DNA of 63,972 bases, filler included, from Choristocarpus tenellus KU-1152 (lineage: Eukaryota; Protista; Phaeophyceae), in assembly GCA_964200185.2 (NCBI GenBank). It is 10 parts of 10 records of this genome, joined end to end, with 100 filler letters (N's around TTAATTAATTAA, not from the genome) between each part and the next. Parts side by side here need not be neighbours in the genome. Positions count along the whole stretch, not along the records: positions 36,583 to 49,103 come from CAXNAD020001812.1; 9 more parts are not named here. One strand, given 5' to 3'. The notes below the pieces were generated by a model. That model did not search any database. It was not told where the DNA came from and worked only from the letters and a program-made list of their open reading frames with translations. This document shows positions 36,483 through 49,203 of the stretch, in pieces (within the stretch, counting starts at the first letter, position 1; each line of letters starts with the position of its first letter). Both the position numbers and the translations under genes were made by a program.

Positions 36483-36589
36483 NNNNNNNNNNNNNNNNNN
36501 NNNNNNNNNNNNNNNNNNNNNNNNNNTTAATTAATTAANNNNNNNNNNNNNNNNNNNNNNNNNNNNNNNNNNNNNNNNNNNNCAAGCCC

Positions 36590-36713
36590 TACAAATGTAT
36601 ATATTTTACCTACTACGAAACATTTTGGAGTCGGAAAATGTCATAAAAAAATCCATGGGAAGCCAAGCCCCACAAACAGGGAAAAATTCGTACCCTCTAA
36701 GATAATTTCACTC
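36590..36713 (+). mobile_element. MITE family A, partial
   Basis: Right half and TIR at the contig start. Confidence 0.75.
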
Positions 36714-37801
36714 ACATTCTAGACGACCAGAGGGAGCATATCTGAAGCAAGAGAGAAAAGGGATGAAATATGGTTATGTCTACAACAAAGGTGATAAATG
36801 AAAAACTTCAGAAATAAGTGAACTATATACAGTGCGAGCAGAAGCTGCATGCCAAGGCATGTTACCCATTGATCCTTGCGTGTTCCACATTCAGACCCAA
36901 AGTTGTAGTGAATTTTCTGCAGTCAGCCTGTCATCACATAATACAACCAAGCAAGAGCAGAGCCGGTTGACTTTCAACTAATCCTTCCCAGATTTGCATG
37001 TATGTGATTGCATAAAAATATATATTCCAAAGAACCTTGGATCCACCTCGCTTCCATGATATCTATCCTGTCTAACAAAAAAGGAAATTGCACAATGTAC
37101 ATCCAGTCCACGGAGAAAGGCATACCAAGGAACCTTCTAACACCGCAACAATTTACAGGCACATTTTCACAATGAGGTGAAGGGTATATGAAATTTCTGA
37201 AAGTTTAAGGAAAAATAATGTTTTCCTTACGGTACTAAACATGCTATGTGTGGCAGTTTGATCAGTGAGACGGTATGGATATCAGGGGAGACATCAATGG
37301 CACAATAATTTTGAAACTGCACCACCCTAAGTTTCATATAATCTTACCACTCCACCCATTCTTGTTTCACAAAAGCGACAATTGATTCAGTGACCACCTG
37401 AAAAGCTCCCAACAGCACTCCTCAGTAGGGGTTATTCATGGTTGCGAATCAGGGGGAACTGAGCACTACCAAGCATCAACAACACACAAGAACACGACTA
37501 GACTCCCATCCCTGCGAGATTTACCTATCATAAGCCACCTTGATGGGCAATCAATACAAAGAGCTCAGCTAGTCGTGTTCACAACAGCATGATCATATTT
37601 ATGGACAAAAGAATACACTGCTGTATTCCATAGGTTTAGCTCGAAGGATCAGTGGCAACTAGAGCAATCATATTACTAGCTGCCTCCCACAAAAAAAAAA
37701 ACTCTTCACACCGAAGGAACATTTCTTCACCAGGCTAGAACTTTGTTGGGTCAACGACATGTTTGCAAATATGGGAACCAGCTTCACTTTGCTGCAACAC
37801 C

Positions 37802-40800
37802 TCAGTTCACACTATATACCACCATGTATGTCGGAATTGCAGCTTCTTCTTTGTAGACCACCACCTCATCATAGTTCAGGCTGGGTCCAACCTGGATGAA
37901 GCAGGATAGGGGGGAACCAGATCGATTAAATTCTGTATTGGTCTCAAATCTGGAACATCAAGGCTTTGCTGCTGTCCTCAACTGTCACTAGTTACGATTG
38001 ACTTCACGAGAAGAAAAAAACGAAATGTGATGCATTCAGTGATGAAGATCCCTACGGACAAAGGGTAGATAGCACGTAAGAAAATAGCACAAAAAGGACA
38101 CGTCAAATTCAGGTGTACATATGGCCACTCACAATAGCCAGATTGAGAAAAGGATCAGCTTCAGCTTCCTAAGCTCTGAACTTCGAATATTAACTCACTG
38201 GCCTATACCCCTACACTACAGTTCTACAGTTACACTGATCAAGACAGGAGTCTTCCCAACCTTCACTCCAACCACACACCCACCAAAAAATTTGAGCTGA
38301 TCGTAAAAGAAGAGGAGAGAAAGAGTGTGACATAGCCAAATCATTTAAGGGGGTAGGGTCACGTCCGTTTGGGGTCCAAAATCCAATGCTGTCGTTTTGA
38401 TGAAGTTTGGCTATCGTGTTTGTTAGCAAGTGTCGATATCCTTATTCCAGACTCACCTTTTCATACATCTTAGGTAACTGTGTTCACACAGAAAACCGAA
38501 AAAGGGTAAAAAACCCTGCGGGAAGCCAAGCCCCAAACAGACAAACAGGGCAAAATTCCACAGTGATTTACTGCTCATCCCAGGTGGGTTCATGGCATTC
38601 ATCTTACCTGTCCGTGGAGGTGTGGTTCCCTATCTGAAGGGCAAGTAGACAGGTAAAAACTCGTTCAACAGCATCACTCACCTCACCCACCACAGAGTCG
38701 TATCCTTGCGGTGGACACTCTGTATCAGGCAGTGAGCCTGATTTGGTCTTGTATGCCTTCCCTGACACAACCGTACACATAAACATGCACCGATAAGTCT
38801 TACCATCAGCCACCTGAACCAGAAAACAAGAGCAAGGAAAGTCCGCACACAGAGTTACAAATATCACGAACTGCACAAAGGAGCTTATAGCTGATTGTCA
38901 TAGTATTATGTCTGCCTTCACAAGTATGAGAAACTCTATGACAGGGTATAAAGATGGTTTTAGTTTAGTTGACAGTATAGTGTGACAAAGAAAAAAACTG
39001 CTGACAGTGGATGTGGAAATACTTGTACCAATTGGGGTAAATGCACAGTGGCATACTACTCCTTCAACTGCTCCTTTCCAGGATGGTGAAGGAACTTTTC
39101 AGATTAGTCCCTGAGCTGCAAAGATGCCTTCAATATAAACCACTGAGCCTACACTGAAGACATTAAACTTGAATAAAAAGCATCCTGTCCTGATGTAGTC
39201 GAGCAGATATGAAGTGGCTGATTGCAAATAGGAATGAAATAGAAGGTGAAGAGGATTATCATTGTGCTGTTGTTCAAGAGGCCTGTGTATCAGGGACATT
39301 TCAAAACATTCCGGTCCTTCATAAGGCAGGCATACGCAAGTAGTTAAGTCCTTGGGAAAGATTGGCTCCAATGTTTTCTGGCATTCCAGGCTAGGTCCAC
39401 CAACTATTGGAACCTGTCAAGTTTGCGGACTGGACAGGTTCCAATATTTTCTGACATGCCTGGACAAGGTCCAACCAAGTCGGTAACGGTCTGGTAAGCG
39501 TGACAGACAGGTTCAATTCTGGGCTGTATTCCAAGTTCAACGGACCAGTCCGGTTGGTCTGTCCAGTTTCCATGTAAAATTGTCTGCAAAACACCAATAT
39601 AAACAAGAAATATACTCAGTATATAACAACAGCCAGGACCCGTAACGTAAACACACAAGGGTGAGCATATGTGTGATATGAAGGAGAGTTGCTCCTGGAT
39701 ATCACCTACAGATGGTTTGAGCTGACCAATCAGGCATCAGTACCTTTTCTCAAGATCTTGTTGCAGTTATTTCAGAAGAGCTATTTGTTTGAGATAAGAA
39801 GAGGCAGTACGGGTCACACATGGAGAGTCAGATGGATAAACAGGAATGACATGGTATGTGCGTGATGGGCACCTAGAAATTTTGTAAGGGTTGCTTCACA
39901 TAATGAGTTACTTCTGCTGAACGCATACGGCTGTACGTTATGAGTAGTATTGCATAGGAGTGAAGCGCACAACATATAGTGTGTAACAGACAGAAATCTA
40001 CTGGGTTTGTACAGTATACTAGCAGCACATATATAGTGGGTTGCTCGGCAAGACTTGTCTTGGCTAGGCTGGTCATGAGCAATTGTTTCTGACAGGGTCA
40101 TTCCATGGCAATCAACTATTTCAAACACCATGGAAACATGATGGTCAACGTTGGTGCGAATACTGTATGATGTTCAACCATATTTAGTCCATACCATCTT
40201 TTATCCATGACAACATCTGTCCATTACACTGTAACACCTGATGCCCATATAAAGTTGGGGTCAATTTGCTCTATAAAATGTCCATTGTCCTGCACCAGGC
40301 TTGGCACTTAACGTCTGTTTTCAGGGCAATGCTCAGAGCCATTTGCTGATGAAGCACTCTCCAAAGCGCCAAACTTGGGAGTTTTCGACAACATTTTAAA
40401 ATGCCAATTCCGCCTCGTTCAAAAGGCAAAGAAAACCCCCCCCCCGTTCATTGTGTGGGACAACACTTGCACTCATTTGCTCTCTATAGCTCCTGTTGTC
40501 AACACTATGCTTTGTTGCGTGTAGCACAAAGATGTCAAATTGCATTGCGCAATTACTATGCCTGAGGTGTGAAATATTGCCTGGAGGTTGTTTGTTGCTG
40601 TATATTCTCACCTTTGAGGAACCAACAGCGTAGTCATTGGACTTTCCTGACACAGAAGAGAAGTATAGACCTTTGCCATAACGCAAGCCAATGCTTGTTC
40701 GCCGGGCCGTACCACCCACTCCCTTAAAAGTGAAGCCATGAGTGCAGATGCTACACACATTGCAATCTGTCCTTGTGCAGGGGCCTCTCTGCTCAACAAA

Positions 40801-42451
40801 ACAAGGAGATGGGGGGATGGATGGATGGATGGATGACGTAAGAAATTTTCCTTTTTTTTTTTTCTTTCTCAGTTTCTGAAACATTGCACTTGTGCTGTTT
40901 TTCTATCATTTACTTCTTTCTTGCGACAAGATTTGAATCTTGACATTACTTCTAAAATTGTGCAAATACTACCTTCAAATTGAGACTGAAAAGGGGTCTG
41001 GGCTATAGGTGAAGGAACACAGCAAAAATGCTTCTATCAGGAATTGGATGTCTACCACCATGAACTTGCCGTAAGGTCAGTGAAGAAGCCACAGTCTCTC
41101 GAAGCACTTGTCCCATGGAAACGCCGCACTTTGTTCATTGTGCCAGTGTATGCTTTGTGCCTTTCTTCAACATCATCCTGCACCTGCCACCATCCATGTT
41201 GTCAGTGTTATGTGAGGTGTCAAGGATATAGTTTCATAACCCTGGGAGGTTGGGGTTGAGACCATGGCTGCTCCTCCAAGTCTGCTCGATGCAGTGTGGG
41301 ATTACCATGCCTTTTGAAAGAAAACATGCAAGGGTCCACCAACCTATCCCTTTGTAATTACTTCTGACACAATGAAGTACACAGAAGTCGTATGGGAGTG
41401 CACAATAAAAATACTGATATTATAGGGAGAGGGACTCGATCCTGCTATCAAACGACTGAGTATTAAATTTCAAATTGGCAGGTACCATCATCAAGGTGAC
41501 ACGAGGACATATTTCCACGACTAACCTGGATCTTAAAAACCCTTTCCACTGTAGGAACGGGGACATCTTTCTTGCCCCATTTTGAGATGAATTGATTCCG
41601 TACACTGATGAAGGCCTTGTGCGAAGGAAGGAGGAGGCTCAGCGAGAAGTTGGAAGTACCGCCAGTGCTCCCGTAAAAGACGCGATCTATAAACCCCCCT
41701 TCTTTGGCGTGACCCCGGCTGCAGTATGGGGACTCCTAGAGATGGAAATGCGCAAGAAAAAAAAGGACAATTATCCCCCTTGCCTTGCTGGCATTGTTAC
41801 CAGCTGTTACTCTGCTGAATCTGCTGAGACGCAACTTTGACTTTCAAGGACCAGACATACCTCTCCAGTGTTTGGGTCATGACATCTTGATTTTGTACAA
41901 CCCGAGAGTGCACATGTGCCTTTAACAGGTTGTTGAACTCCGGTCATTTCACTTGCGTGCGACCTGCAGCAAAACTGATGACATCGTCCGCTTGCCTCCA
42001 CATGGACCTCATTGAAACAGCCAGGGAGCTGGCAAACCTGCAACTGGGGTCGTATGAACTATACCTGTTAGTACAACATAGACATGAACGTCCCAGAGGC
42101 GGCGTCTTCAGGGATGACAAGAAGGAGGAGTGAGACGGTGATATCAATTCATAAAACACAGGATATATTAACATGATCGAAGCTGCAACTCCTTCCTTTT
42201 CCTATGACTAGTTTTGATCCAACAATCGAAAATATGCAGAATCCATCCAGGCAGGGTCTAGTTTTGAGCTGCATAAGATGAGGGCAACCGTCGACAAAAG
42301 ATCATACATGGGTCCCATGGGCAGGAGCCCGACCTCCTCTACCAGTGGCCTCGTATGCATGAGTTTTTCCGCAGTAAGCATGCCCTTCGTAGCATGGTCT
42401 TTCACAGCCATGAAGACCGCAAGTGGGTGTCATCACGCTTCTCCCAGCCAT
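37802..42451 (-). CDS. PARP-like (H-Y-E) ADP-ribosyltransferase with three N-terminal Cx4C...Cx3H putative zinc-binding motifs, 347 aa
   Basis: Manual splice: complement(join(37802..37891,38682..38813,40612..40788,41070..41183,41526..41735,41861..42037,42308..42451)) = 1044 nt, open from ATG to TGA. Five GT-AG introns and one GC-AG intron. Catalytic motifs: RRFHGT (H), RYGKGLYFSSVSGKSNDY (Y), MFMCTVVSGK, PPQGYDSVVGE, LNYDEVVVYKEEAAIPTYMVVY (E). N-terminal motifs: CGLHGC..YCGKTHA, CQLPGC..FCCRSHA, CALSGC..YCSRGHA. Confidence 0.9.
38333..38560 (+). mobile_element. MITE family A, diverged, inside the last intron of the PARP-like gene
   Basis: GTCCGTTTGGGGTCCAAAATCCAATG...GGAAGCCAAGCCCCAAACAGACAAACAGGGCAAAATT. 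Confidence 0.75.
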
Positions 42452-42601
42452 GTGGCTTCACAATTGCAATGTACCTTATCCAGTTGCGAAAGTGGAGAAG
42501 AGATATTCGTTGGGAAGAAGGTGAATGTGAGATGTAGCATCAATAGTACAATGGCTTGCTTAGTAGTAGGCAAATATATCCATCCATAAAAGGATAAAAA
42601 A
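42452..42601. promoter_or_regulatory. putative compact bidirectional promoter and 5' UTRs between the PARP-like and NADAR genes
   Basis: Only 150 bp separate the two divergent ATGs. No specific motif identified, so this is inferred from geometry. Confidence 0.5.
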
Positions 42602-44564
42602 ATGTCTATACCAAATCCCCAGACAAGATGGTCTCAAATGAAGTCATCGATGAGATCCACATGTAGGTGTAGGTTACAAGGCTGTGACAAAAAGGCATAC
42701 GTCGAGATAAGCGGTCGTGAGCACAACTTCTGCTGTCATTCTCACGCACGTGAGTTTGAAGGCAAAAAAGTGCGAAGGGGAAAGAGGTCGACAAGGAATG
42801 AAGCATCAAGCCCCCAATTATTAATAGATCAAGATACGGAGAAGGCAAGTCGTGTGGAATCAAGAGTTTTCTACCCAGGAGTAGGACAAGGGATAAGCAC
42901 ATTTCTTCAGAAGAGAGTGATGGAGGTCGGTCGTAAGAGAGGGAAACAAGAGCCGAGGACGGGGGGTAATAGAGCTGCCAGGCTGGAGACTATCAGGCAG
43001 CACGAAGAAGTCTTGGATGGTACAGGGGTTGTGGAGACGAATGATATGGTTCTTTTCTGGAAACCACCTGCACCCTTTGTGCAGTGGACTCCTTCTCCTT
43101 TCTACGTCAATGGGGTGAGTACGAGTTCATTACACAAACGTCCCAGTATCAAAGGGGTTTCCGTTGCATCTCATCTTCCAACACCTAATGAAAAGTATTA
43201 TCTTTCACACCGGCGTTGATCTCTCTCAGTCACCTGCGTGAATTACATCATACTTGTTGGGTTAAATTTTAAAACAAGCCACCATCTTCTACAACTTTAA
43301 CAGTTTGTCCTTCACGTTCACGGACGGTGGGTGCTATAGCTGCGTTGCAGGTGGCCACAGTTGTTGATCTGATACCCCGCACTTTTTTTCGAGGGTAGGC
43401 TTGTAGGGTCGTCTAGCCCCCCTCCGTTTGACTTAACCGATGGGTTACATCTGATGAATAGTTATTCGTCTGTAGGACCTTGCATGTTGTGTCCACTGTC
43501 CTACACCAAACGAGTTGTTTTTTCCGTTCTCATAGCTGTACTTCATTTGTACTTGCCTTGTATTTGTGCGGTAGCAAGTCCCTGACAGGTCTGTGAAGGT
43601 GTCGTTACCCTGCCCTGCACGATTCCATCACCTCTCATTCCCCCACCCCGCAACTCGGCCAGGTGAAGTATTCGTGTGCCGAGCAATTCATGATGGCCAG
43701 CAAAGCAAGGTTGTTCGAGGACAGCACTACCCTTCGGGCGATTATGAGGACAGACAATCCTGAAGGGCAGAAAGCTCTTGGACGGCAAGTGGCCCATTTT
43801 GATAATAGGTTGTGGGAGAAATAACGGGAGCGTATGGTCAAGGTGGGGAACTACAACAAATTTACACAGAATCGTGACCTTCAGAGGCAGCTCCTTGACA
43901 CCAACCAAAAGGTAAGAGAGCATCTGGCTGAAACTGTTTGTAAGTGTGTTGTCCAATGACAGGAGTGCTAAAGATGGTCTCGGTCACACCCTTGATATAG
44001 AGTGGGTTGCTACTGCCATGTTCTAATACATTCAATCTCTCAGGGGTGCAACCAAATTCCATCCAATGATGTAGGCCATTTTCGGCGGACTGATACTCAG
44101 TGTGTCTCCTGCAGCATGCTAAGCAAATCGGGCTCCACATTGGCTCCAAAGATCCTGCCCATATTGTATGACTCATGGTTGGAGACTGTTACGGTCTTGT
44201 GCCCCTGCCTTCCTGACCCTCTTGGCCACCTCAGATTCTCGTGGAAGCAAGCCCCTTCGATAAGGTGTGGGGCATTGGCTTGAGCGCCGACAACCCTGCC
44301 TCCAGAGATATGAGGCAATGGAAAGGTGAAAACAAGCTGGGTAAAGCACTCATGGCAGTTCGTGAACAGATAATATTTGAAAATAAGCAAAACAGAAGGC
44401 CTTCGACGTCTAGTGCACCTGCTGGAGGAGGCATGGATAATGGCCAGGGTGTACGAAATTTGCAAATGGGGGGTAAGTTGGATGGTAACCATGGTGAGGG
44501 ATGGAAGAGGCAAAGTGGGAAAAAACATTTTTTTTCTCTTTCTGTCAGTTTTCCATTGTGGTAA
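42602..44564 (+). CDS. NADAR/YbiA (DUF1768) family hydrolase with an N-terminal Cys/His motif; one in-frame TAA (possible pseudogene, allele or sequencing error)
   Basis: join(42602..43114,43663..43911,44235..44564), GT-AG introns. NADAR motifs: VLFW..PFVQWTPSPFYVNG|VKYSCAEQFMMASKARLF, QKALGRQVAHFD..W, NYNKFTQNRDLQRQLLDT, ILVEASPFDKVWGIG, WKGENKLGKALMAVRE. TAA at 43822..43824 in exon 2. The start ATG and the C-terminal tail are less certain. Confidence 0.88.
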
Positions 44565-47500
44565 AGCCCATAGGAAGAGTTTCATTAGATGTTGGAGCAG
44601 CTTCGTGACCATTCTCACTTGTGCTAAGCAGTTAAAATAAGGCCATCCTTAGGGATGGTCCACCATTTGATCTTGAAATTCCTGATTCATGGCAAGTAAG
44701 AAATTGGACGTGGGTAGCAGGATATGATGCTATGGAACTTACCATGAACTGTGTAAGTATTTCAACTCATGATTCACTTCTTGTGTCGCGATATAATAAC
44801 ATACACCACCGGCCTACTGTTTTTGCTTCTTGTATATGCGGGTTTGTATAGTTGTTGTGAACTGGGCTGGTTAGATGAGTGGTAATAGAAATGTTGTGTG
44901 TGCAATGTTGAGACCATGTTGGGAAATGAATTGCGGTTGTTTCTTGTTCTATTGATAGGAGGATTCACACACTTGTAGAAATGAGGTGTAAGTTCTCCAG
45001 TATTGGTCGGAAAGGCTAGAGACTGTCCATGTAGATTTAAGTGTGAGGGAGGGGGGGCTTATAGGTAATAAATAGGAGTGAAGGAAACTGATGGCAGTTT
45101 CTTCCTGCTCAGTGACACACACCCTGCGCCCGCAATACAGTTCCAAGGAATTATCCTTGCAAATCCAAGTTCATTGGAGATCCCCCACTAGAAATGCGCC
45201 TGAGTACAATGAAGCCAATGACTGCTATCGTTCTTTCATTTCCGACTCCATCTCCAATACCCGTTAGAAGTTGAGCATGTTTGCCTTCTGTTACTACTAT
45301 TGCTGTGCAGAATACCCTCTCACATATCTGCTCCTACTCCTGCACCTGCTGTAGGTATTAGCTATTACCTTGGGGTAAAGGTATTTTGGCAACCCATGTC
45401 ACAGTGGTAATCATAAGAATTGTACAATCCTCACCCCCACATCTTTGAGCAAAGGTGCTCTTGCAATCTGATAGAGGTATAGTGCCTACGTGTTGTTGAT
45501 GACATGACCTTCCAATATGCAGTCCTTTTGTACTTTACGAAGTGTATTGATCTGTGCTTAACTAAATGCCATCAATGAACAGATTTTAATGTGGTATCAT
45601 AAGAGCTCTGTTGTACGCAAGATGGATAGCTCAACAAATTATTGCCTCTCCTTGTCATTGTCGCTGTAAATGTTACTGTGACACCGTTTCCAAATTATAA
45701 AGCGGTTTTGACTTATTTAGCAACTCCAGTGCATCCAATCACCTCAGTTGATCAGTGCAAAAGGAGGTGCATTTCTTTATATATGGATATGTGTAAACCA
45801 GGCAGGCACATTTCAAATTCTCACCCTTTGAAAGTTCCTAGGTGGTATTGCTAGTTCGTACTTGGGACATAAGTTCTGTTACAGTGTCTTTTATTTGAGC
45901 TGTGGGTAGGGACAGCTTGCAAGTAAGAGGAGGGCATTTTGCTCTCCTCAGCAAACAAGTTAATGCCTTTGGAGACAGTCTACTGGGAGCACAAACCTTG
46001 GACCTGGCTTCTGTTGATCGATCCGAAAAATATTTATTGTGGGAATTGAGCATCTCTGCGCGTGCAGTGATGCCCCACCCCAACCTTTCTAATGAAAGGA
46101 TTTCAGCACAGTTGTACATTTTTCCAATTTGTGTTTATGATTCATGTAAGATGCAGTCAATAACATGTGTTTTACGACAACTGCAATACATACTGAATAC
46201 ATACATTGTGTATGTGCTCTATGTGTTCCAAATGTTTCGGGTGCGAGTAAATAAAAAGCCTTTAAGACACAAATACTTCTGAAATCCTTGTGCTACACAG
46301 CATGTCCCTACAAGATTGTGGCTTTCCATGACCAGGCAGTGTACTTTTAAAGATTTTGAGTGCATGTTGGATTTTTTGTAGATGTCAAAGTTACTGCGTA
46401 TGTCACATCTGCAATTGAATCGTGATTTTATGTACCTGACTGGGGGTCAAAGCAATTAAGGGGTAGGCAGGTTTGGACCCTTTTGCATTCTAAGTCATCT
46501 TTCCTTGTGCACAGTGTTGTATGCAAAATTGTCACTCCCACTTTGCCCCTGCAAAGTGACACCACAATTGAGCAAATGCTCCTTCTACAAAATGGTGTAT
46601 TTTTACCCTTTCTTGGGATGCTTAGAATACAACACTGCTGACATCTCAATCGATTTGGACTCTGATTAACCAAGAACCTATGTATGGTTGGAGAGGAGGC
46701 TGGGGGGCACCTGTCTTGAAGGTACACATGGAATACATAGAGGAAGTTGGATAAAAAGCTGTGCAGAGGATTGGTGTTACCAAATGATGAGTAGATCATA
46801 AATGTATTTGAACATGGACTTGGAGGAGTAGATGAGTTTGGTTGTGGCCTCCTCACCCAACTTTCACTATCTTGATGTGTTTAACCATGGTGCTCATTTC
46901 CACCATTCTTACGTAGCTTGATCTCAGTGCTGACTCTGGGAATCGTACCACACTCCCTTTTCTTGAACCATGCGCAGTGGCGACATTCACTTTCTACGAA
47001 TACAAGTGTTAGTTTATTCTTTTCTAAATGAGCTAACTGAAGTGCATCCACAAAGCCCTACCAGCTGGATCTTTTGTGTTGCAATGCCAACCCTCTCTTA
47101 ACACCGTTTGGAACACAATTGGAGATTTCTTTGTGTGATAATGCATGCAAATTCCTACCCTTCTACCTTATATGTAGATTGACGAAACTCTTAAAAGAAG
47201 AAAATTCTCGAGTAAGTGTTAGAAGTGTATAAATTACAAAAAATATGTATTGAACCCTCAACGGTCGTATTTCTCTGGAGTGTTTGGCTACATTTGACCT
47301 ATGACATCCGTTATTCATTGCAATTTCACCTTGGAAAACAAAACGCTCAACGTTATCATTTCCCTATAATGCTCGGCGGTATTCGAACTACAACGTTAAC
47401 TGTTGATTACGATGTCCACCAGTTTTCTCTAGTACTCACAATATCCGTTACTAGGAGGACAAGGTCCTGGAGTCGGTTGATCAAAAATGCCTATTGTATA

Positions 47501-47943
47501 ACACAAAGGCTTTCGCATAACGCCCGTTGTCAAGGTTTGGTGCACTTTGCTTCTTACCAACACTTCTTCAGGAAACACTTGACATCGTTTGGTTCAAATA
47601 GATGTTTCACAAAGGGGTGCAATTACGTACATATATATTCTTCCATCTACAACTTTGATTTTTCTAGGAAGGGAATCCATAAATTCTTAGTTCACCCAGA
47701 AACAGGTGTTTGGGGAAGAATATGGTGCGTCATTTGAATTTCTTGTGAACATGTTTAAGAGACGTGCGGGTATACGGACCACCAAACGAAATCTATCTCA
47801 CTGATGGCTACAGTTTAAGATGAATAAAACTAGATGTGGTTGAACCATATCCCACATGAAACCGTCTACGTCATCTCTAAATGGGTAACAAATCAGGCAC
47901 CAGCTTAAAACGAGTCATCAACAAGGTAGGATGGGGGAGGTGG

Positions 47944-48200
47944 GAGTCAAAGCAAGCGAGAGGTGCCCAGGTTTTGGACGTTTTTCATTTTAAACCAGTT
48001 TTTTCATCTTTTGCAATTCACCCATATTTGTATGGATGAACTGCCAAGTTTGACTGGAGAGTGTTGATTTCTCTGTTGATTGAGACTTTCAACAGAATTC
48101 AGAAAGCTTCCTATTTGAATTTGTTAAAAAGGCGAAGTTTGCACCTATTTGTCAACCTCCTTAAAATGCTACCCTCAGTACCTCTCGCATACTTTGACTC
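47944..48200. mobile_element. MITE family C
   Basis: GAGTCAAAGCAAGCGAGAGGT...ACCTCTCGCATACTTTGACTC. Confidence 0.8.
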
Positions 48201-49203
48201 TGAACGTGGAAGTTGAAGGATTGGTGATACAGTTTTGAATCATATACGGATGTCAAGTTCGACATAGATTATGGAACATATCTGCATGTAGTACCTTCAT
48301 TGTGGAGTATTTGATTGGTTTTAAAGGGTTGGGTGTTTGGAAAATCATCTTGTTGAAGATGTGGTTAGAGGACATATTTGATCGAGTAAGTGAAGGTAGA
48401 AGAGTACAATGCTGAAGGTTACGCGTTGTCTTTTTCCTTGTATGGCACGTGTTGTTGACGTAGCGTCGTTGAACTGGATGGTCGTCTGCATTTATTTGTT
48501 GTACAGGTTCATTGCAGCAAGCGGCAAACGACACTCCAGGAGTCAACATTCGACACATGAACCATTTGATCACCTCATGTGCAAGCAGGGAAAATATCTG
48601 ACTTGGTGAAGTTGTTACCAAGAAAAGGGGGGAGGATGTAAGCATGAAGCACACTCACTCTTGTAACCACGGAAACCACTATTAACGCTGTGGAATTACG
48701 GCTTGATCAGGGCCGGAAGAAACAAGATTCCCTAGAGGTGGGGATACAAGAAAGTGAACGGACTCCTAAATTCCCTTTTTGGACTTCCTGAAAAGGATTC
48801 CTCATGCGTTGCTGGAGGTTAGTAATTTAGTAACCTGTCAAGAATTGGAGGTTTGTGGACAAAGAGTTTATTATGAAAGATAATTACTGTAATGATTGTT
48901 ATATTGATACAAATATTTACGAAGACACTTGAATTTCTTGTGTTCCCCTCATCGATCAAAATATTGTTGTGAAACGATCCGCCTTCAGCTAATACAAGTA
49001 TTACATTTGAACTGATATTTATGCGAATCGCGTGATTCTGTGGCGGCGTGGTTCACTCAGGCAAGGGTGGTGAAGAGAATCACCAGGCAAGATGGTCCAG
49101 ACGNNNNNNNNNNNNNNNNNNNNNNNNNNNNNNNNNNNNNNNNNNNNTTAATTAATTAANNNNNNNNNNNNNNNNNNNNNNNNNNNNNNNNNNNNNNNNN
49201 NNN

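Follow-up and report, generated by a model that had tools for sequence, protein, structure and literature searches.

A tankyrase-like PARP gene lies head to head with an interrupted NADAR gene that begins with the same type of zinc finger in the brown alga Choristocarpus tenellus

Among eukaryotes other than vertebrates, NADAR hydrolases are widespread; in vitro they take ADP-ribose off guanine and cytosine. For the marks that they cleave, no eukaryotic writer of endogenous origin is known, a gap stated explicitly in the field (PMC12945103). A locus in the early-branching brown alga Choristocarpus tenellus raises the question of whether such a writer might be encoded right beside a NADAR gene. 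In a window of 63,972 nucleotides (the whole stretch of DNA that was analyzed, ten genome pieces joined end to end, whose coordinates are used throughout), the piece at 36583-49103, which is the entire contig CAXNAD020001812.1 of assembly GCA_964200185.2, carries a gene for a PARP-like ADP-ribosyltransferase (hereafter the ART) head to head with a gene for a NADAR-domain protein. The original prediction had taken the two for a co-regulated writer/eraser pair modeled on bacterial DarT1 and its NADAR antitoxin. We confirm the underlying observation and find its interpretation partly supported: the NADAR protein begins with a zinc finger of the ART family, peptides of the Ectocarpus NADAR protein Esi0017_0056 carry the same finger, and the Choristocarpus NADAR frame is interrupted by a genuine stop codon next to an intact, transcribed ART gene. 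The locus is a testable lead, not a demonstrated system.

Three public sequencing runs cover the stretch, all of them from one study and possibly including the assembly's own source data; X1 and X3 provide DNA-like contigs, and X2 provides spliced contigs that are effectively RNA. The X2 contigs, with canonical introns on the expected strands, bear out the proposed divergent pair of spliced genes, in which the ART ATG at 42451 on the minus strand and the NADAR ATG at 42602 on the plus strand are separated by exactly 150 bp and each is preceded by a stop in frame just upstream. A single X2 RNA contig (record 11, 811 nt, depth 162) runs unbroken over 42308-43118 through ART exon 1, the spacer and NADAR exon 1, which shows that the spacer is transcribed and that the 5' ends of the two transcripts meet or overlap. 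The spacer is also bridged by independent contigs of all three runs (X1 40879-44580, X2 42308-43118, X3 42269-43027), which rules out a chimeric contig or misassembly at the junction within the scope of that one study. Each of the ten exons has a length divisible by 3 and can be translated and searched alone, and searches were run exon by exon or through two proxies, P0001 (the annotated partial ART product) and P0016 (a full-length relative). The description of the surroundings as full of transposons was not confirmed: neither a transposon domain nor a repeat of at least 30 nt was found in the piece 36583-49103. The layout of the locus is as follows.

37802..42451, minus strand: ART gene, ATG to TGA, with 7 coding exons, 349 codons plus stop and all introns in phase 0, from X2 RNA contigs.
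42308-42451, 41861-42043, 41526-41735, 41070-41183, 40612-40788, 38682-38813 and 37802-37891, minus strand: ART exons, from X2 joints.
42452..42601, no strand: transcribed 150-bp spacer between the two ATGs, from the sequence and X2 record 11.
42602..44564, plus strand: finger-NADAR gene, with exons 42602-43114, 43663-43911 and 44235-44564 and X2 joints 43113/43662 (+1) and 43909/44233 (+2).

What connects the two genes beyond their position is a small zinc finger of the form C-x4-C ... C-x3-H, a link at family level between finger-NADARs and one PARP clade that had previously been overlooked. A hidden Markov model (HMM) built from 90 fingers, all of them from ART relatives in other organisms, scores the N-terminal finger of the NADAR protein at 34.8 bits; 2000 shuffles reach no more than 7.1 bits, and about 185 stand-alone NADARs no more than 4.2 bits. 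The nearest relative of this finger is ART finger 2, with 53-56% identity (56% over 32 aa). The finger occurs together with the ART-type PARP clade in brown algae, Tribonema, a cryptophyte and an amoebozoan, and in the data examined it is specific to the ART and NADAR families. A recent inverted duplication was considered as the source of the common finger and is ruled out, since the two genes share no inverted repeat at the DNA level. The finger is of an unclassified type: no Pfam model matched it; its profile against PDB sequences gave only non-significant matches to the Spp1 C3H finger (E 0.08); and a Foldseek search with a 34-residue model (predicted local distance difference test, pLDDT, 89) returned nothing at E ≤0.001, with L24e, PNUTS and Spp1 all at E >1, while comparison by VIA gave weak Z values of 2.0-2.7 to PNUTS and A20 fingers. 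Word-based searching with NADAR exon 1 (finger plus linker) returned no homologues in the 113-359 aa range. The four fingers of the locus are placed as follows.

42668..42748, plus strand: N-terminal finger of the NADAR protein, ART type, from the HMM score and alignment A1.
42356..42421, minus strand: ART finger 1 (C-x4-C ... C-x3-H), from translation, with 30.7 bits by the finger HMM on exon 1.
41954..42034, minus strand: ART finger 2, nearest relative of the NADAR finger, with 50.1 bits by the finger HMM in exon 2.
41861-41914 plus 41706-41735 (within 41706..41914), minus strand: ART finger 3, split by intron 2, from translation and aligning with fingers of relatives.

The combination of finger and NADAR is not private to Choristocarpus. 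The Ectocarpus protein Esi0017_0056 has been described as a DUF1768/NADAR protein of 391 aa with 2 introns, a central domain and two paralogues, making three in Ectocarpus; abiotic stress induces it, and in Arabidopsis it raises tolerance to salt and heat by a mechanism reported as not known. It has been expressed in E. coli, and in tobacco it appeared in the cytoplasm and surrounding the nucleus (PMC7922944). The same paper proposes lateral transfer of the Ectocarpus NADAR from proteobacteria and makes no mention of zinc, a finger or a connection with PARP genes, treating the N-terminus as being without recognizable feature (PMC7922944). Its mass spectrometry peptides (Suppl. Table S1, PMC7922944) nevertheless contain a C-x4-C motif followed by VYQDPVTG..HDFC, the next peptide beginning with THA, and because they match the finger consensus of the family, Esi0017_0056 carries the finger. 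Judging from these peptides and the published description rather than a full alignment, the Ectocarpus protein has an N-terminal finger, a linker, a central NADAR domain and two introns, as does the Choristocarpus gene, with 391 versus 363 codons; it differs in being intact where the Choristocarpus frame is interrupted. The two probably belong to the same brown-algal family, and the finger-NADAR fusion is conserved in brown algae, with members in Choristocarpus and Ectocarpus.

The putative writer is a recognizable PARP. Its H-Y-E triad is intact, as originally predicted, and all three residues align to tankyrase motifs. The Pfam PARP model PF00644 reaches 23.9 bits on single ART exons, just under the cut-off of 26.7, and membership follows from the annotated product P0001, which carries PF00644, and from the relatives. 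An exhaustive search with ART exon 5 gave 155 relatives, and among 77 of the longer ones that were aligned (A2), 69 contain PF00644, P0016 scoring 33.3 bits and so exceeding the cut-off. Against PDB sequences the family profile matches tankyrase-1/2 best (E 1.5e-22), ahead of PARP3, PARP4, PARP10 and PARP1, and the AlphaFold2 model of P0016 (pLDDT 88, catalytic domain mostly >94) retrieves tankyrase-1 as the top Foldseek match (E 6e-14, TM 0.73-0.77). Tankyrases lead both searches, and no DarT chain appears among the best 60 of the 96 PDB-profile rows or in the Foldseek top 50. By sequence profile and by model, then, the ART has a predicted catalytic domain that is tankyrase-like and not DarT-like. 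It resembles tankyrase-1/2 (PARP5a/b) in its best profile and fold match, in the H-Y-E triad and in having no helical regulatory domain, but differs from tankyrase proper in that neither Ank nor SAM was matched by Pfam on any ART exon or in the 77 relatives, the family having C-x4-C...C-x3-H fingers at the N-terminus instead. Identity to tankyrase is only about 24%, and a Cys cluster with four members invariant in the family (C309, C320, C325 and C328 of P0016, alignment A2) lies between the HGT and GF motifs rather than after the SKSNxY motif.

41115..41117, minus strand: catalytic His (RRFHGT), from translation; invariant as H301 in A2.
40744..41093, minus strand: Cys cluster inside the catalytic domain, between the HGT and GF motifs and spanning the exon 4/5 junction.
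40663..40665, minus strand: catalytic Tyr (GLYFS), aligning to tankyrase GIYFA.
37865..37867, minus strand: catalytic Glu (NYDEVVV), placed by profile alignment on the tankyrase YAEYVIY motif.

Five of the ART introns are GT-AG and one is GC-AG, according to X2 joints checked against the sequence, and the last is inferred from a loose X2 end at 38680 that resumes at about 37889-37891. P0001, a database protein from the same contig, matches the ART model except at the exon 4/5 junction: the RNA joint at 40789-41069 is a GC-AG intron that gives a protein reading ...DLT/RGPC..., where P0001 reads ...DLTASPC..., so that this junction in the public annotation is alternative or mis-modeled. Between 38590 and 44580 the only base difference from the window is at 39795, where all three runs have C and the window T, probably an assembly or version difference. 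Intron 4 contains low complexity at 40806-40878, a GGAT-type repeat followed by a T run, where reads and contigs are cut and the X1 contig alignment has a gap. In intron 5, at 39390-39480, many short X1 and X3 contigs end or begin at 39418-39473, and a joint goes back from 39458 to 39395 with 10 extra letters; the pattern suggests a short repeat, either dispersed or tandemly variable.

The ART belongs to a family that is multi-copy in brown algae and Tribonema, often in tandem or inverted clusters, with named relatives in Ectocarpus species, Scytosiphon, Tribonema, the cryptophyte Hanusia and the amoebozoan Clydonella. N-terminal partners of its catalytic domain vary, from arrays of up to 5 C-x4-C...C-x3-H fingers per protein, also in Hanusia and Clydonella, to RanBP2-type fingers (10 of the 77 aligned relatives), NPHP3-like TPR arrays, and single cases of HRDC, TruD, ZZ and UIM. 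The RanBP2, UIM and HRDC partners fit nucleic-acid and ubiquitin recognition alike and do not decide the substrate. At five loci from Ectocarpus species and Tribonema (L005, L007, L010, L011 and L012) the paralogues stand in tandem or head to head, with 2-4 copies per 20-30 kb. Some clustered paralogues have NPHP3-like TPR arrays in place of the fingers, a pattern that recalls rapidly evolving immune-type families. One Tribonema minus model, KAG5189803.1 (L007:10001-41960, a 32-kb gene range), joins a TruD pseudouridine synthase to a finger-PARP in 1208 aa; the fusion may be genuine, or the annotation may have run two genes together.

The putative eraser consists of one finger, a basic linker and a YbiA-type NADAR domain, in a frame of 363 sense codons if read through. 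Pfam NADAR (PF08719) exceeds its cut-off of 35.1 on two exon pieces, with 53.9 bits for 43663-43821 and 58.9 bits for 44235-44561. Residue roles were taken from the Phytophthora nicotianae NADAR (PMC11543638), whose structure 8BAU is a direct match for exon 2. This free-standing stramenopile domain of 189 aa, also YbiA-type, is a proven guanine-ADP-ribose hydrolase without a linked transferase (PMC11543638), and it differs from the Choristocarpus protein in having no fused finger. In its numbering, equivalents of E43, K50, K75, R79, W89, R93, E125, D130 and W133 are all encoded, with Y84 replaced by Phe and D86 by Asn. The catalytic Glu, the Lys and the subfamily Glu being present, the protein has the residues that base-ADP-ribose hydrolysis requires. 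At the position of the DarT1-associated Asp (D171 of the E. coli C7 NADAR), the LVEAS motif has the YbiA-type Glu, and by its motifs the domain is assigned to the YbiA (Glu) type, not the DarT1-associated Asp type. A NADAR profile search collected about 7,500 mostly bacterial NADARs within a length window of 104-330 aa, which leaves out the 391-aa Ectocarpus protein. The closest NADAR, P0314, lies in a bacterial operon, and the domain is 60% identical to it and 54% to a Myxococcota NADAR.

43681..43704, plus strand: NADAR active-site Glu and Lys (E-x6-K), equivalents of E43/K50 of P. nicotianae NADAR, in the motif AEQFMMASK.
44244..44270, plus strand: motif VEASPFDKVW, with the YbiA-subfamily Glu (E125 equivalent), Asp and Trp.
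43822..43824, plus strand: TAA in frame at codon 225, 87 nt before the last exon junction, with no variant reported in three runs.

The in-frame stop that had been noted in this domain is genuine. Four coding pieces tile the whole NADAR domain without gap or overlap against free-standing NADARs, with one column, that of residue 92 of the Phytophthora NADAR between the two active-site halves, occupied by the TAA. No variant of the TAA was reported in the DNA-like runs X1 and X3 or in the spliced X2 contig covering 43663-43909, and an assembly error is ruled out to that extent. Identity to P0314 is 66% and 57% upstream of the stop and 52% and 67% downstream; because the downstream part is as well kept as the upstream part, the nonsense change is recent, unless the codon is read through. 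Two side observations concern this gene. The public model P0169 (43834-48601) starts at a Met after the TAA and has a splice leading from about 44474 to a far-off exon near 48.6 kb; the X2 RNA contig instead is unspliced through 44474 and continues about 765 nt beyond 44580. Right after the finger, a basic patch KKVRR at 42764-42778 (exon 1, residues 55-59) may be a nuclear localization signal.

How might these elements work together? The explanation that we favor, tentatively and with somewhat less than even confidence, is that of a finger-targeted writer/eraser pair whose eraser copy has recently been disabled in this strain. The common finger would bring both proteins to the same target, onto which the PARP domain would transfer ADP-ribose from NAD+ and from which the NADAR would remove N-glycosidically linked ADP-ribose; the pair would thus maintain a reversible mark that responds to stress, a context suggested by the Ectocarpus data, and the eraser copy would have been truncated very recently. 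Because the eraser is disabled while the ART is intact and transcribed, the ART would not be an unconditional toxin, and the pair would be regulatory rather than toxin-antitoxin-like. Several points weigh against such coupling. Co-expression is supported insofar as both genes are transcribed in one RNA sample with the spacer covered; its basis is a single RNA run of assembled contigs, which give neither strand nor transcript ends. An intact, transcribed ART beside an interrupted NADAR is an ART that does without this eraser copy. To our knowledge, H-Y-E tankyrase-like domains are protein modifiers in all characterized cases, and in the literature consulted NADAR activity is reported solely on base-linked ADP-ribose (guanine and cytosine) and on riboflavin intermediates; that this PARP clade makes a base-linked or other N-linked product is speculation, hinted at by the pairing with NADAR. 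Conserved linkage did not materialize either. Nine further loci, which together contain at least 14 ART copies and were taken with as much as 10 kb of flanking sequence, contig ends permitting (Ectocarpus siliculosus, two loci; E. fasciculatus; Ectocarpus sp. 6, sp. 13 and CCAP 1310/34; Scytosiphon; Tribonema minus; and an ENA contig), showed no NADAR within 10 kb by tBLASTn with the NADAR exons and five free-standing NADARs, the sole matches being finger matches inside ART genes. The catalytic-domain tree leaves the window ART in a polytomy, so that none of the nine loci can be called its orthologue and the linkage test is weaker than it looks. Fusions to NADAR or to a macrodomain are likewise absent from the 77 ART relatives. 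As a rule, ART genes of this family come without a NADAR neighbor, and the head-to-head arrangement has so far been seen at the Choristocarpus locus only. Finally, the common finger could be a by-product of local duplication between neighbors.

That last point opens onto the main rival, which we consider a substantial possibility, if not a probable one, and rank only a little below coupling: neighborhood and common finger would be historical by-products, and the two enzymes would act on unrelated substrates. A NADAR of possibly bacterial origin would have come to lie beside a finger-PARP gene and gained its finger by local duplication or gene conversion, to serve in stress metabolism, cleaving damaged flavin or nucleotide intermediates as an N-glycosidase, or to repair base ADP-ribosylation by bacterial toxins, next to an ART that is an ordinary protein-modifying PARP. 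The identities to the bacterial-operon and Myxococcota NADARs, the proteobacterial transfer proposed for Ectocarpus (PMC7922944), the missing adjacency at the nine other ART loci and the known riboflavin-intermediate glycosidases among YbiA-type NADARs all agree with this account, as does the NADAR finger itself, which is nearer to ART finger 2 than to the Ectocarpus NADAR finger (about 39%, hand count), as local exchange would have it. Against it, Choristocarpus and Ectocarpus have both preserved the finger-NADAR fusion, its zinc ligands intact, the ART and NADAR fingers show no similarity at the DNA level and so have long been retained, and the recurrence of the same finger with the PARP clade from brown algae and Tribonema to a cryptophyte and an amoebozoan makes it look like a targeting module. 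If the pair is coupled after all, the NADAR could still be functional, its TAA being read through or bypassed or its activity supplied by intact paralogues, so that the two proteins work as a normal writer and eraser. Sequence downstream of the TAA is undecayed, the mRNA persists with appreciable contig depth despite a stop 87 nt ahead of the last junction, and the three Ectocarpus paralogues suggest that Choristocarpus may have more; we nonetheless regard this as improbable. Brown algae, as far as is known, use the standard genetic code, and an alternative code with TAA as Gln is ruled out, as the aligned column holds V, I, H, K, R or C in relatives. No X2 joint that skips the TAA was seen, and the genome annotators' own model begins after it. 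Least likely of all, by our estimate very much so, is a eukaryotic toxin-antitoxin or defense module in the manner of bacterial DarT1-NADAR (DarTG1, PMC11543638), in which the ART would ADP-ribosylate DNA guanine and the NADAR would be its obligatory antidote. The likeness lies in a diphtheria-toxin/PARP-class transferase genetically linked, tightly and with transcription over the spacer, to a NADAR, a family of DarT1 antitoxins, with its active-site Glu and Lys conserved, and multi-copy, tandemly clustered ART genes with variable N-terminal modules, NLR-like TPR arrays included, are typical of conflict systems. Yet the Choristocarpus transferase is a tankyrase-like eukaryotic PARP domain and not a DarT, its NADAR has the YbiA-type Glu and not the Asp, the genes are spliced and divergent rather than in an operon, both proteins have an additional zinc finger, and at least 14 ART copies elsewhere do without a nearby NADAR. 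The supposed antidote is also cut by a real stop in DNA and RNA while the writer is kept intact and transcribed, and the toxin-antitoxin analogy is poorly supported.

The finger-targeted writer/eraser pair accordingly stays our tentative choice, and its extension to a whole biology is more doubtful still: brown algae, and perhaps other protists with finger-PARPs, might possess an endogenous, stress-responsive and reversible ADP-ribosylation of a base or N-linked acceptor, written by a tankyrase-like PARP and erased by a NADAR, with the same, hitherto undescribed finger guiding both. What the locus provides is a concrete candidate writer, through a NADAR family that shares its finger with one PARP clade and stands head to head with a member of it in one early-branching brown alga. 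The question can be tested with proteins that are already producible, the Ectocarpus NADAR having been made in E. coli, and gives biochemistry a way into a brown-algal stress gene that makes Arabidopsis more tolerant of salt and heat (PMC7922944). If true, the pairing would supply the first cognate transferase for eukaryotic NADARs, and with it a PARP-clade enzyme that makes a NADAR-sensitive linkage.

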